Assembly: GCA_002269645.1 (NCBI GenBank)
Contig: NIVC01000583.1
Coordinates: 186,001 to 250,000, forward strand
From: Macrostomum lignano
Taxonomy: Eukaryota
Direction of reading: 5' to 3'
Length of the DNA stretch: 64,000 bases
Numbering within the stretch: position 1 is the first letter of the stretch; each line of letters starts with the position of its first letter. Shown here piece after piece: positions 38,601-47,600 of this stretch. A program made the position numbers and the translations under genes. A model generated the notes under the pieces. The model had not been told where the DNA came from, did no database searches, and was given only the letters and a program-made list of their open reading frames with translations.

Positions 38601-41600
38601 TCTTTCCAGCTGGGTGCCCTCAAGCTCAAGTTGCGCCGAGGAAAGTCTGCCAAAGGGAAGGCTACTGCCAACCCCGGCATCTCCGGCAAGAGCGGGGCGC
38701 AGTCTAAGGCCCAAGGAAAGGCGCAAGCCGATCCCAAAGCCAAAGCTGCATCTCGCCCCTCTGCTAGCAGCAGTTCGGCGACCGCGGTAACGGCTCCGGC
38801 CGAGCCCCGGGAACCAAACCTGCCAGTCGGAGAAGGAGTTGAGGACGAGGCCGGGTCTTCGGAATCCGAGCTCTCCTCGGCCACCTTGGTGGGGTCTGAA
38901 GGTAAAGATGCAGGTGAGGAAGCTTCCTCCATCCTGTCATCGGAGCCTGAGGACTCTGCTGGGGGGGCCGGTGGGGGTGAGGAGGCCATGGACGTCGACC
39001 AACTCCCATCTCCCAGTCAAGCCCCAGCGGCCTGGGACGAGGACGATCTGTTGTCCAAGTCTCCTTGATGGCCCTGGGCTCTAGCCAGATATTGCATTTA
39101 ATACAGTATGACTAAGCTCCACGCTGCCAAAGGAGCGACATTCTGTCTGCAAATAAATTTACAGCATTGCGTATCTGCGTCAGTAAATCTGATGAAGATT
39201 GCTGAGCTGTACAGGCCAGGCCTCATCCTGATCCAGGAACCCTGGATGCGCAACGGTAAGTTGCCCAACATTCCCTCTGGCTACTCTGATTTTTATGTGT
39301 GTGGCCCGGGGAACAGCCGCCCTAGAGCGGCTATCCTCGCTGCTAGCCATCTCCAGGCTTGGCTGAGGACTGATCTCTCTGATGGAGACCTTTGCGTCAT
39401 CCAATCTAATCATTTCTCTCCGCGTACGTGTCTTGTTGCCTCGGTTTATATCCCAGGCGACAGAGACCCTGCTCCCGAGAGTTTACTGCGCCTTGCGCAG
39501 TACTGCGAGTCCCAGAACGCTGAGCTGTGCTTAGGGGCGACCTCAACGCGCACCACAAGCACTGGGGCAGCAAAGATACCAACACTAGAGGAGAGGAGCT
39601 TCTGGCCCTCATCTCTAACACAAACCTCATGCTCTGCAACCGCGGCAGCACTCCTACCTTTAATAATGGCAGATGGACCGAGGTCCTCGACGCCACACTC
39701 GTTACCCAAGACTCTTTGACAGAGTCAAGGAGTGGAGAGTCTGGTCTGAGGAGCCCTCCCTGTCTGACCACTGCTTTATCGCCTTTAATATCGCGGACAC
39801 TAAAACCCAGTCTCCGATCACTTGGAGACGCAATATCCGCAACACTGATTGGGCGGCCTACAAGGCTGCCCTTGATCTGCACCTGCAGGAACTCACGGAC
39901 TTACGTCCGATTGAGACCTGCGAGGATGTGGATCATATGGCTGAGACGCTGACAGGTTGCATTATTGCAGCCTACGAAGCGGCTTGTCCTGCTCGCGCCT
40001 ACAGAGGCAAGACCTCGGCGCCGTGGTGGAACCCGGAGCTGGGGAAACTCAGGCGGAAGGCCAAAAGCCTTCATCGCCGTGCCATGAAGACAATCGCCTC
40101 AGGGGGGCAAACGGCAACTTAAACCGAGGGACTCTGTGACATCCGCCAGCTTTTCGTTTTTCGAGGAGGCTCTTCCCCCTCCTTTTCGTTCTGGCCTGGC
40201 GTGGAAGCGGCTAGCTTCCTCGTCTTGGTCTGCTGGTGGGGGACGGATCCCCCCTGCTGCTTTTTTTGCGGGGCAGGTGGCTGCTAAGTAGTTGGCTGCT
40301 GGCTAAGCGCCAACTACCCATCGACAGCCCTTAGTTGCAACTGGTACCACACGGGTTCTCGAGGGCCGCTCTTGTGGGGGAGGGCTCGGGCGTCGGCTGT
40401 CAACTCGACCTGGCGCCTGTGTCCCAAGCCCGCAGCCGGCCTCCCGCCCCCTGATCTTGCAGAGTGTGGACCGGGGGCCTGCCGGAGCCTCGCCTGGGAG
40501 CAATCCTGGGATAAGACGGCAACCCAAAGCTTCTCTGCTGTTTACCGTGGCAGAGGGTAGCTCCACGGAGCTGGCTGGGGGTATATCCAGTCCCCGAGCG
40601 GTTACCCCCCCTCTTTTCTACATTTCAGTTTTTCCATTTCAGCCTACTCTGCATGGATAAATCAACACCACCTGACACGGCTCGGGAGCCGTCAATTCCC
40701 GCGGCCGGGGGTCCGTCAATCCCCCAACCCTCCAACATGGAGGTTGATTCTGCCGCGAATCCCGCGGAAACCCCCACACCTCGCTCAGGTGCGTCCACCT
40801 CTACCCCCGCTACAGGGGCGTCTCAAAATGACGGCTTCCAGGTCGTCAACCGTCGCAGGCGCGATGATAAAACCTCGGCTGGCTCTGAGCGGAAAAGGCA
40901 GCAGCCAGACGAGCGTACCGACCCCTCGCTGGACCCCAAGAGGCCAAAGGAGGCCAATGCTGGCACGTACGCCAAAGTGGCGACGGAGCCGAAATTTAAA
41001 ATCTGCGTGCGCGCGGCTAGCGGTACGCTGACCACCGCCCAGATGGAAGCATCAATCGGCATGATTGATGACTTCCTCTGGGAAAACGACGCCCTCGACA
41101 TCAAAGTCGAGGCGATTCGAAACGCCAACGGCAGCGTCATCCTCGCCTTCAAGGACGAAGCCCAGCTCGAGCTCGCGCTGGCTAACCTGGTGTCCATCTC
41201 CTGGGACACCTGCACGACCGCCCTCCCGCCTTTGGTCGTTGAGCGTGCCCGACCACCGCCGCCCTGCAGGCGCTACCGAGCCTTCTACTCCGGCTCGAGA
41301 AGCATCGAGGAGATCCGCGCCCGGCTCCTCAGTAAAAACCCCGACCTACCTCAGGACGGTATCCGGGCCTTCAAGGAGGTTCCGGCAAAAGGCGCTCCCG
41401 GCAAGACCCTGTACATGGGTTTCTCCGCGGAGTGGGAAGACGCCCTCAAGAAGGACGATTTTGCCGCCTACATCGGAGCGTGGAAGATCGTCTTCCACCT
41501 GCTGCTCAGGCGTCGTCCAGCCGGCGATCGGCGCCGAGGTGAGTCCGTGAGCTCGGATAGCTCTGGGAACGAGTAATGCCGTTCCCAACCCCGTGCCAAA

Positions 41601-44600: not shown

Positions 44601-47600
44601 ACACCTCAGTTTTCCAAGCTGAAATTTGCGCCATTGAGCAGTGTGCCCAGCAACTGTTTCAGGCGAACATTAATAATTTTGACATTAATTTCTACACTGA
44701 TAGCCAAGCTGCTATTAAGGCCTTAACCACTGAGAATATCTCCGCTGCTACAGTATCTCAATGCCACCGCAGTGTGCAATCTCTCTCAGTCCTTAACAGG
44801 ATTAGAATTATCTGGACACCTGGTCACAGCAACATCCTGGGCAACGAGCTCGCGGACTCTCTCGCCAAGGAGGGCAGCAACCCAGACGGCAACCACCGTC
44901 TGATGAGGCTACCCACCCCCAGGTCGCAAGTCACCCGCCATATCAACAGGTGGCTCCATCAGCAGCACCAGCTCCACTGGAACAGCTGCACCGAGTACAG
45001 GCAGAGCCGCTCTGCCATGCCTAACCTGAACAGGAAAGTCTCTGATTATCTGATTTCGCTTAACAGAACCGACCTCAGGGAGATGTGCATGGTCCTAACC
45101 GGCCACGGATTCTTCCAGAGACATATATCGTTGCAAACCGGTTGCCCTCCCACCTGTCCCTTCTGTGGCATAGGAGAGGAGACCGCGGAGCATCACGTCA
45201 CCTTCTGCCCTTACTTCAACAAGGCGCGGCACAAATACCTCGGCCACCCCCAGCGGATGGACGAGCTGACCACCGCGGACAATATCCGAGACCTCCGCGC
45301 CTTCGTCCGGGACTCCGGCCGGATGAGGGTCGCCGATGCCTCCACTGCGGACCTGCCGACTACTGGCGGGGACTGGGCGCACCCCCAAGGCTAATCCTTG
45401 TGCTCTTTTACCTTGGGGTTGCGATAGGGGCCTCGCGGCCTATTCGCGGCGCCTGCGCCCCCCGTCAGTAGTAAGTAAGTAAGTAACACAAACCTCATGC
45501 TCTGCAACCGCGGCAGCACTCCTACCTTTAATAATGGCAGATGGACCGAGGTCCTCGACGCCACACTCGTTACCCCAAGACTCTTTGACAGAGTCAAGGA
45601 GTGGAGAGTCTGGTCTGAGGAGCCCTCCCTGTCTGACCACTGCTTTATCGCCTTTAATATCGCGGACACTAAAACCCAGTCTCCGATCACTTGGAGACGC
45701 AATATCCGCAACACTGATTGGGCGGCCTACAAGGCTGCCCTTGATCTGCACCTGCAGGAACTCACGGACTTACGTCCGATTGAGACCTGCGAGGATGTGG
45801 ATCATATGGCTGAGACGCTGACAGGTTGCATTATTGCAGCCTACGAAGCGGCTTGTCCTGCTCGCGCCTACAGAGGCAAGACCTCGGCGCCGTGGTGGAA
45901 CCCGGAGCTGGGGAAACTCAGGCGGAAGGCCAAAAGCCTTCATCGCCGTGCCATGAAGACCGGAAACCCGGAGGACATGGAGCTTTTCCGGCAAGCCTCC
46001 CGCAATTTCAAATCTGAAGTGCGCAAGGCCAAGGAATGTAAGTGGCGCCAATTCTGCAATGAATTGGATCAAGACAGACCTACTTCTAGGCTTGTCAAGG
46101 CCCTTACAATGGACAAAATGTCCAAATTAGCCATGATAAAAAAAGATGATGGCTCTCTTACTAAAGACCCTGAAGAAGTGCTTCAGCATATGCTTAGCAC
46201 ATTCTTCCCGAGGGTACCTACTGCTAGACCGGAGCCCAACCATTCGATGGATGGAGCCACCCTAGCGGCGGGCATTGTCACTGAAGACCTAATCGCTCGT
46301 GCGGTCAGAACCTTCAAACCCTTCAAATCTCCTGGACCTGATGGTATCTACCCTGTTCTCCTTCGTGAAGCAGCCAAGATACCCTCGTTCCTGAGACTCA
46401 CCCGCAATCTTATGCGGGCCTCTATCCAGCTGGGATACGTTCCCAAAAGCTGGACTGAAGCTCGAGTAGTCTTTATTCCCAAACCTGGGAAGGGTGACTA
46501 CCAAAGCGTCAAGGCCTTCCGGCCAATTAGCTTAACGTCAGCAATGCTTAAGCTCACTGAGAGGCTTATTCTCTGGCGGCTGCTCTCCTGCGAGCTGACA
46601 GCGATGCCCCTCAGCAATAATCAGCACGCCTTCCGTACCGGGAGGTCGACTGACAGCGCCCTGCATGCGATTGTCGAAAAGATTGAACGGGCGGTACTGG
46701 GTGACGGTTACGCCCTGGCTCTCTTTCTTGACATTGTTGGCGCCTTCGACAACGTTATCTTTGAAGCGTTTCAGAGGGCCCTTCAAAATCGCAAAGCTCA
46801 TGCTACCCTCATACGGTGGATCATGTACATGATCTCCAACCGTACGGTCACTGCCCAACTTCTTGGGCAAACTGCCTCCACCAGAGTCTGTAAGGGTGGA
46901 CCCCAAGGCGGAGTCCTCACCCCGACGCTCTGGAACCTGGTCATGGACGCTCTTCTGAGTGACTCCCGACCTGACCCCGTCTTCAAAGTCGGGTATGCTG
47001 ATGACGTCACGGCCATTGTGGCAGGACCGTCTCCCAGCACGCTCAGGGATCTGATGCAGAGCTTTATCCGCAAAGCAGAATCCTGGGCCAATGACAATGG
47101 TTTGGAACTCTCTGAGCCCAAAACCGTTGCCATTATGTTTACCAGCAGACTACGCTGGAACATACGTCCTCTGCAGCTCTACGGCAGAGATATTGCCTTC
47201 GCGCACCAGACCAGATGTCTCGGGGTCACACTTGACCACCGGCTCAACTGGTCCTTCCACGTGAAAGCAAAAGCTAAGCGTGCCTCAGCCATCCTGGCCC
47301 AGCTCCGACGAGCACTTGGCACTTCTTGGGGTCTATCCCCAAAGCGGCTTTGGTGGATCTATACTTCCGTAGTTAGACCTGCCATTACGTACGCCTCTGT
47401 TGTCTGGGTTAGCGCTACCCAGGTCAAAAGCCATGCAGACCTGCTCAACACGATCCAAGGCAGAGCGTGTAGGCTCATCTGCAACGCCACCAGGTCCACG
47501 CCCTTTGCTGGCATGGGGGCCTTTCTTAATCTTCCGCCTCTTGACCTCTTCATCAGGGGTGAGGCGGCTAGAACGACGCGGCGTCTAATTGATGCCGGCG

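Follow-up and report, generated by a model that had tools for sequence, protein, structure and literature searches.

Long target-site duplications made by LINE retrotransposons

LINE insertions are usually bordered by target-site duplications of 5-20 bp, a size which is the norm of the class and not one of its defining features. To our knowledge, the breaking and joining of the second strand constitute the least understood step of LINE integration, and most of the natural insertions with duplications of 0.5-1 kb known to us so far come from Dualen. Precedents for LINE-made duplications of 0.1 to more than 1 kb do exist, namely Dualen-4b of Chlamydomonas, L1 in cells deficient in nucleotide-excision repair (NER), and R9. 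The latter element, from bdelloid rotifers, is said (the report being that of Gladyshev and Arkhipova in 2009) to be rDNA-specific, to belong to the R2 (RLE) type and to generate a duplication of fixed length, and human L1 insertions with large target-site duplications were reportedly recorded by Gilbert and by Symer, both in 2002.

In Chlamydomonas reinhardtii, the de novo insertions of Dualen-4b_cRei are flanked by target duplications with a median of 900 bp, which the authors took to be target-site duplications of very great length (López-Cortegano et al. 2023, PMC9977147). They proposed that such long duplications are caused by the pair of endonucleases of Dualen, RLE and APE (PMC9977147). 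As regards L1, duplications of more than 100 bp represent less than 10% of the events in HeLa cells, and become the rule, reaching more than 1 kb, when NER is defective (Servant et al. 2017, PMC5223499). This change in L1 duplication length upon an NER defect shows that the host can influence where the second break is placed.

The window analysed here, a stretch of 64,000 nucleotides from the flatworm Macrostomum lignano, contains an element B (40092-45483) nested in an element A (37051-48809), both on the forward strand, as are all features below, B being flanked by a duplication of 476 bp and A by one of 993 bp. In terms of scale, these duplications match those of Dualen-4b_cRei, but Dualen combines RLE and APE whereas A and B have APE only, and the Dualen insertions were recorded as new events in mutation-accumulation lines whereas those of A and B are deduced from one assembly. 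Human L1 is, like A and B, an APE-only LINE; however, the L1 events come from cell culture and from an element of the L1 clade with a poly(A) tail, while A and B are assembled genomic, presumably germ-line, insertions of RNase H-bearing elements with a simple-repeat tail. Unlike those of R9, the duplications of A and B vary in length (476 and 993 bp), lie at sites other than rDNA and are 4-8 times longer.

Anatomy and classification of the two elements

In the best reading, B represents a non-LTR retrotransposon of the APE type with an RNase H domain, complete in length and of recent insertion. This 5.4-kb element starts with a 5' untranslated region of 561 nt (40092-40652), whose 5' end is defined only by where the duplication ends, followed by ORF1 (40653-41576, 307 aa), the stop codon of which overlaps the start of ORF2 in the motif TAATG. 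ORF2 (41576-45394, 1272 aa) is intact, so that both reading frames are as uninterrupted as the preliminary description had them. It encodes an APE-type endonuclease (aa 135-251; Exo_endo_phos_2, 5.5e-22), an RT (aa 527-779; RVT_1, 2.5e-30), an RNase H (aa 973-1101; RNase_H, 5.4e-13) and a C-terminal Cys/His motif. The 3' untranslated region and simple-repeat tail occupy 45395-45483, the tail reading …CAGTAGTAAGTAAGTAAGTAA, with a final TAA common to the target (microhomology).

B is multi-copy and near-identical between loci. Pieces at least 98% identical to its ORF2 occur in 32 M. lignano UniProt gene models, in which they are joined to unrelated host domains; these, together with flanking copies devoid of substitutions, lend indirect support to the earlier proposal that B is young and probably active. 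B-family fragments are present in many unrelated M. lignano genes, hence A is at least not the sole target of B. No duplicated host peptide segments were detected beside the B-derived pieces in 121 retrieved proteins, the chimeric M. lignano gene models among them, a comparison which is uninformative since the gene models splice the element.

The outer element is split into two arms. The left arm of A (37051-39615) comprises the 5' untranslated region, an ORF1 running from the ATG at 37563 to a stop at 39068, and the beginning of ORF2 (start ATG at 39108) with the endonuclease, this part of ORF2 bearing a 1-nt frameshift in the G run at 39534-39537. The right arm (45961-48809) holds the remainder of ORF2 with the RT and RNase H (stop at 48715), the 3' untranslated region and the tail CTAAGTCAAGTCAAA. 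The pieces of A match the same Pfam families as B (Exo_endo_phos_2, RVT_1, and RNase_H at 3.8e-09), and the two ORF1 products are homologous, with 26% identity over 150 aa (E 6e-8), while a Pfam search with both proteins returned no domain. The tails are of different types, (AAGTC)n-AAA for A and (TAAG)n for B. A protein search for an uninterrupted A retrieved no intact copy, its matches in M. lignano being limited to the patchy gene models P0093 and P0101. Look-ups by exact protein with B ORF1, B ORF2 and the UniProt model P0001 matched no contig.

A is itself enclosed by two copies of 993 bp of host DNA, at 36058-37050, ending at the 5' end of A, and at 48810-49802, beginning directly after its tail. 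These copies are 100% identical, with 0 differences in 993 nt in a self-BLAST of the window, and comprise an intron together with the 5' portion of an exon from a gene for a DEG/ENaC (ASC) channel, the exon homology of which continues through the right end of the second copy (49802/49803). The best reading is that A had entered this DEG/ENaC exon, with a 993-bp duplication, before B landed. The preliminary description had recorded the 476-bp duplication without naming its nature or linking the 993-bp duplication around A to the same anatomy.

Both elements are APE-type non-LTR (LINE) retrotransposons, with the APE endonuclease N-terminal to the RT in ORF2. They lack terminal repeats of their own, they end in simple-repeat 3' tails and their flanks are duplicated target DNA; besides, no restriction-like endonuclease was found in the C-terminal 170 aa of either ORF2, where the only match was a weak one to zf-RVT. 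Their unusual feature is the size of the target-site duplications, which at 473-476 bp and 993 bp falls outside the usual range and exceeds the usual LINE insertion footprint by 30-60 times. Regarding the clade, the RNase H downstream of the RT, a feature of LOA, is present in A and B, and A ORF2 has its best named relatives in proteins annotated as 'Lian-Aa1 retrotransposon protein', at 37-38% identity across 84-97% of the query, an R1-named match being more distant (23-25% identity). The nearest named relatives thus appear to belong to the Lian/LOA clade, a provisional placement taken from best-match names. In the same line, A and B share with Lian-Aa1 of Aedes and LOA of Drosophila the two ORFs and the ORF2 order APE endonuclease, RT, RNase H, Cys/His motif, but differ from them by their flatworm host, by an identity of only 35-40% and by an ORF1 devoid of recognisable domain.

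The inner duplication

A self-BLAST of the window aligns 39616-40091 with 45484-45960 over 477 columns at 99.79% identity. The copies measure 476 and 477 nt and show 0 substitutions, their sole difference being a 1-nt homopolymer indel, CCC at 39705-39707 in the first copy against CCCC in the second. An identity over 476 nt cannot be due to chance, and this pair and the 993-bp outer pair are the only long dispersed repeat pairs within the 30-55 kb region. The identity ends exactly at both termini of B: to the left, the first copy is preceded by …CATCTC and the second by …AAGTAAG, and to the right they are followed by AATCGCC… and CGGAAAC…, respectively. As the 3 nt with which the repeat opens (TAA) may just as well belong to the final unit of the tail of B, the length of the duplication is 473-476 bp and that of B 5392-5395 bp.

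Both copies are A ORF2 coding sequence. The first corresponds to codons ~169-327, its frame being broken by a 1-nt deletion in the C run at 39705-39707, whereas the second is in frame and runs unbroken into the remainder of A ORF2; 159 codons have thereby been copied. The duplicated segment sits between the endonuclease and RT domains, and the insertion point lies at aa ~327 of A ORF2, equivalent to aa ~356 of B ORF2, in agreement with the initial view that B had split A between these two domains. The repeat pair and the domain layout likewise bear out the A-B-A order formerly described, including the restart of A, just after a B tail found exactly where it had been placed, 476 bp upstream of the insertion point. 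It had also been predicted that uninterrupted A would contain the segment once, and a rebuilt A, as distinct from genomic copies, does not refute this: when the segment is kept once, one collinear HSP covers the alignment of A to B ORF2, and the same is true for over 30 full-length relatives. Since B ORF2 and these relatives all have the segment a single time, the repeat represents duplicated target DNA, and neither an LTR nor a part of B.

Proposed mechanism and alternative explanations

We consider it probable that two successive target-primed reverse transcription events, each with a top-strand break situated 0.5-1 kb downstream of the initial nick, gave rise to these very long target-site duplications. 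The steps of target-primed reverse transcription, the distant break and its maker are all inferred from the anatomy. More precisely, the bottom strand of A would have received a nick at 39615/39616 or at a position as much as 3 nt to the right, and the freed 3' end …TTA would have annealed to a UAA in the (UAAG)n tail of the RNA, thereby priming cDNA synthesis. The top strand would then have been broken about 476 bp downstream (40091/40092 in terms of the empty site), instead of the usual 5-20 bp, and the 476 nt between the breaks would have parted into single strands, each being filled in to leave one copy on either side of B. The insertion of A into the DEG/ENaC exon would have followed the same route earlier, with its 993-bp duplication. 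Candidates for the origin of the second break are the endonuclease of the element itself, or a host nick, an Okazaki end or a repair intermediate. This scheme is supported by the exact contact of both repeat pairs with the element ends, while the 3-nt TAA microhomology between the B tail and the target supports the priming site; the 5' ends of B and A are placed by the repeat borders in a single assembly.

A different origin of the duplications would be a redundant, polyploid and repeat-rich PacBio assembly, wrongly joined inside high-copy elements or across haplotypes. M. lignano assemblies are indeed redundant (~700 Mb assembled against ~500 Mb measured), fragmented and PacBio-based (PMC10733133, PMC12801592), both frameshifts of A are homopolymer indels of the kind that errors in long-read consensus typically produce, so that the sequence is not free of errors, and the near-identity of the many B copies invites mis-joins within B. 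Nevertheless, A and B each have two seamless junctions that fall exactly on the element termini, with tail-target microhomology at the 3' junction, whereas false haplotype duplications are not expected to stop exactly at transposon termini. Moreover, a mis-join in B would presuppose four independent insertions at one place, as a second locus would be needed in which B lies 476 bp upstream in a copy of A that is itself located 993 bp upstream within the same ASC gene. As both nested layers share one anatomy, the 476-nt copies differing by no substitution and the 993-nt copies by nothing at all, one chimeric join cannot yield both duplications, and we regard an artefact as quite improbable. The assembled repeats could also be mistaken for the LTRs of an LTR retrotransposon spanning 39616-45960, as they are near-identical, directly oriented and 5.9 kb apart around an RT-containing unit. 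LTR retrotransposons are characterised by LTRs bounded by TG…CA, a PBS, a PPT and gag, protease and integrase genes. The 476-bp repeats, however, are A ORF2 coding sequence collinear with relatives, starting with TAAC… and ending with …AGAC, without a TG start or a CA end, and the unit between them has an APE endonuclease and a simple-repeat tail, no integrase, protease or gag domain being found; this candidate was rejected, its probability being practically negligible.

Two further explanations accept the assembled sequence. By unequal crossing-over, an established mechanism known from the Drosophila Bar duplication, at the junction of which a transposon lies, B insertions of the same orientation 476 bp apart on homologues or sister chromatids could have recombined within B, and A insertions 993 bp apart likewise. 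The product would look identical to what is observed, with element ends adjoining the repeats, and both families are multi-copy and recently active. However, four independent insertions within windows of ~1 kb and two exchanges would be needed, compared with two insertions for the two reverse transcription events, and the B fragments in many unrelated genes give no sign of site-specific targeting, which makes such exchanges highly improbable. Alternatively, the left copy of the inner duplication could be inserted cDNA, originating from 5' transduction by a B transcript that began upstream in another A copy, or from an RT that switched its template and passed from B RNA onto A RNA, with the 5' end resolved by homology with A. 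The target being itself a transcribed repeat, A RNA homologous to it probably exists, and the frame-breaking 1-nt deletion of the left copy is what an error-prone RT product might carry; yet the copies differ by 0 substitutions, and the transduced segment would need to begin, on its left, exactly at the nick site. Besides, the outer duplication has the same anatomy and is single-copy host DNA including an intron, for which unspliced pre-mRNA of the very gene being hit would be required, so that a cDNA origin appears very improbable.

Occurrence among relatives and possible implications

Flanking repeats were surveyed in five relatives with genomic flanks (L001-L005) and in 80 metagenome loci, 16 of which in all were usable. 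None of these 16 distant relatives showed flanking direct repeats of at least 30 bp, most of them lying on short-read metagenome contigs, which would break at such repeats; no long flanking repeats were seen around the Lian-like insect copy L001 or the four other distant relatives L002-L005 either. The positive control on the window worked, and the negative is a weak one, the relatives being only ~30-35% identical. As far as such a weak survey goes, it suggests that long duplications are not a habit of the whole clade. A limited literature search, which is no proof of absence, did not retrieve any description of long duplications for M. lignano or for elements of the LOA/Lian type.

That the APE-only LOA-like LINEs of M. 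lignano routinely make target-site duplications of 0.5-1 kb is a tentative generalisation that we hold to be rather doubtful, its basis being two events in one window, both picked because they were conspicuous. If they do so, the second-strand break would not be placed by the element near the first nick, but would be supplied far off by a host nick, an Okazaki end or a repair intermediate, possibly reflecting flatworm flap or nick processing, and the dual endonucleases proposed for Dualen would not be needed. In nature, such elements would then steadily generate duplicates of exons and segments. Should the two cases themselves prove sound, either the host or the condition of the target DNA can determine how far away the second break falls, and two nested, essentially undiverged cases from single-APE elements would argue against a two-endonuclease cause. 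M. lignano is an experimentally tractable, transgenic model. Finally, the direct repeats left by an insertion can later delete it by recombination, and long duplications copy exons, as seen here for intron and exon sequence of the ion-channel gene, and for 159 codons of A ORF2.

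Inner duplication and element B

Self-comparison of the window aligned positions 39616-40091 with 45484-45960 over 477 columns at 99.79% identity, the sole difference being a C run that reads CCC in copy 1 (39705-39707) and CCCC in copy 2. The identity ends abruptly on both sides, and such a pair of repeats cannot have arisen by chance. Between the copies lies the 5.4-kb element B (40092-45483), with two open frames, ORF1 (40653-41576) and ORF2 (41576-45394, 1272 aa), and a 3' end reading …CAGTAGTAAGTAAGTAAGTAA. The preliminary description had proposed that B, with this tail and two open frames, inserted into A and divided it between endonuclease and reverse transcriptase, 476 bp of A being repeated after the tail; the self-comparison bears out this repeat, the tail lies where it had been placed, both frames are open, and the finding is real, with that reading supported. 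The TAA that opens the repeat could also belong to B as its last tail unit, so that the duplication measures 473-476 bp.

B ORF2 encodes APE-type endonuclease, reverse transcriptase and RNase H domains, and its C-terminal 170 aa contain no second endonuclease, giving a weak zf-RVT match only. The ORF1 stop and ORF2 start of B overlap as TAATG (41574-41578), a type of overlap that favours coupled translation in SART1, a LINE of the silkworm. Unlike in B, ORF2 of A starts 40 nt past the ORF1 stop.

Element A and its reading frame

The surrounding element A (37051-48809), whose tail is CTAAGTCAAGTCAAA, is related to B: its ORF1 (ATG at 37563, stop at 39068) is homologous to B ORF1, and tblastn with B ORF2 as query gave matches of 40% identity, spread over three frames at 39147-40113 and confined to a single frame at 45479-48700. 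The repeated 476 bp are coding sequence of A ORF2 (codons ~169-327) and lie between its endonuclease and RT, so A is indeed split where the preliminary description had put the break. Inner copy 2 shares its frame with the remainder of A ORF2, a single-base deletion breaks the frame in copy 1, and another frameshift falls in a G run (G4) at 39534-39537, directly before the conserved GDLNAHH motif. As both frameshifts (39534-39537 and 39705-39707) are single-base indels in homopolymer runs, and as the published M. lignano assemblies are PacBio-based, they may be long-read consensus errors rather than mutations, in which case A would have been intact when B inserted.

When the flanks are joined with the repeated segment present once, A ORF2 is restored as a conceptual protein of 1245 aa, which aligned as a single collinear HSP to aa 47-1270 of B ORF2 and likewise to more than 30 relatives of full length. 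This collinearity indicates that the doubling is specific to this locus and arrived with the insertion; at the family level, it also answers the check set in the preliminary description, whether uninterrupted copies of A contain the segment once, since B ORF2 and the more than 30 relatives carry it once.

Outer duplication and host gene

A is itself bracketed exactly by a 993-bp direct repeat (36058-37050 and 48810-49802, 100% identical), copy 1 running up to its 5' end and copy 2 beginning directly past its tail. This repeat is host DNA, namely intron sequence and the 5' part of an exon of a DEG/ENaC channel gene. Two ORFs (35583-36041 and 49484-49945) match the amiloride-sensitive sodium channel family, and since the match of the latter crosses the right end of copy 2, copy 2 and the following sequence represent the undisturbed exon. 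The channel exon is broken by the 12.8-kb composite insertion in sense orientation.

The anatomy of both layers is directly visible: in each of the two non-LTR insertions of the window, a target segment is followed by a full-length element with its tail and by the identical target segment. No further A- or B-related sequence was detected in the 64 kb by tblastn with B ORF2, and the other scanned ORFs of at least 180 aa matched host gene families only, or nothing. The motif GGCC(C)TCATC precedes two of the boundaries, the left one of the B duplication (39603-39615) and the right one of the A duplication (37039-37050), which is probably a coincidence.

Proposed mechanism and alternative explanations

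Both layers are most simply explained by two rounds of target-primed reverse transcription, one after the other. Each would involve a bottom-strand nick where the repeat now has its left end, and, for B, the freed …TTA-3' end could pair with UAA in the tail of the RNA. A break in the top strand would follow 476 bp (B) or 993 bp (A) downstream, the usual distance being 5-20 bp, after which the duplex between the breaks would separate and each strand be filled in, leaving one target copy per side. The break distance might be set by the endonuclease of the element acting late and far off or, alternatively, by a pre-existing host nick, an Okazaki end or a repair intermediate; the step order and the agent of the distant break are what we infer.

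An LTR reading of the repeats was ruled out by the domain content and by their coding nature. A wrong join within a high-copy element is conceivable in an assembly that is redundant, but one such join could not make both layers, all four junctions are seamless and placed at element ends, and a second locus would be needed, where the same gene holds A at a site 993 bp upstream and this A in turn holds B at a site 476 bp upstream. Recombination between two independent insertions in the same orientation would give a product identical to the observed arrangement, although four insertions and two exchanges would be required. Finally, the inner repeat could be imitated by a 5' transduction or by a switch of template to A RNA, in either case with homology-guided joining, but such a route fits poorly with the outer repeat, because the latter includes intron sequence of a single-copy gene.

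Very long target duplications are on record for other LINEs. In Chlamydomonas mutation-accumulation lines, the target duplications made by Dualen-4b_cRei have a median length of 900 bp, described by the authors as far above the prior record of 126 bp for R9, and suggested by them to result from its two endonucleases (PMC9977147). A and B resemble Dualen in duplication scale but have one APE endonuclease instead of two. Human L1, to which A and B, with their one APE endonuclease, are alike in mechanism class, generates duplications above 100 bp in less than 10% of HeLa events, and in most events in NER-deficient cells, where they reach more than 1 kb (PMC5223499). No report of long duplications in M. 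lignano or in LOA/Lian elements was found in the literature searched. Long target duplications by LINEs are known but rare, and the host and LINE lineage are new here, on a sample of two events in one window picked for looking unusual.

Family and copy number

UniProt entries of M. lignano match parts of B ORF2 at 95-100% identity, and 32 gene models of this species contain B ORF2 pieces at 98% identity or more, fused to unrelated host domains, indicating that B has multiple copies, was amplified recently and has targets beyond the A family. In these 32 models, identified in a comparison with proteins P0003-P0060, the pieces follow a recurring pattern (aa 63-108/146, 253-443/459, 948-989 and 1133/1198-1272), and it looks as if cryptic B splice sites served to form chimeric transcripts or gene models. 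Among named relatives, the best matches to A ORF2 carry the annotation 'Lian-Aa1 retrotransposon protein' (37-38% identity), by which A and B are provisionally placed in the LOA clade. Flanking repeats of at least 30 bp were seen in none of 16 distant relatives with usable flanks, a weak negative since most of these contigs are short-read assemblies; the positive control on the window worked.

Other features of the window

The channel gene region lies between two copies of a ~230-bp repeat (34869-35098 and 53281-53510) that are 87% identical. Judged by eye, the repeat resembles a tRNA on its minus strand (…GCCTAGTGGTTAGAGCG…GGTCGGGGG…), and it may be a tRNA-derived SINE. The window is also dense in minisatellite arrays (1-20000, 29578-29791 and 58154-59818), with periods of 10-41 bp and up to 136 copies, several of them inside or adjoining a minus-strand gene (15.5-20.7 kb) with DBC1/SAP/LAIKA domains. 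Two MFS/Nodulin-like transporter genes (55734-57143 and 60076-61443, minus strand) are tandem paralogues, ~73% identical at the DNA level.
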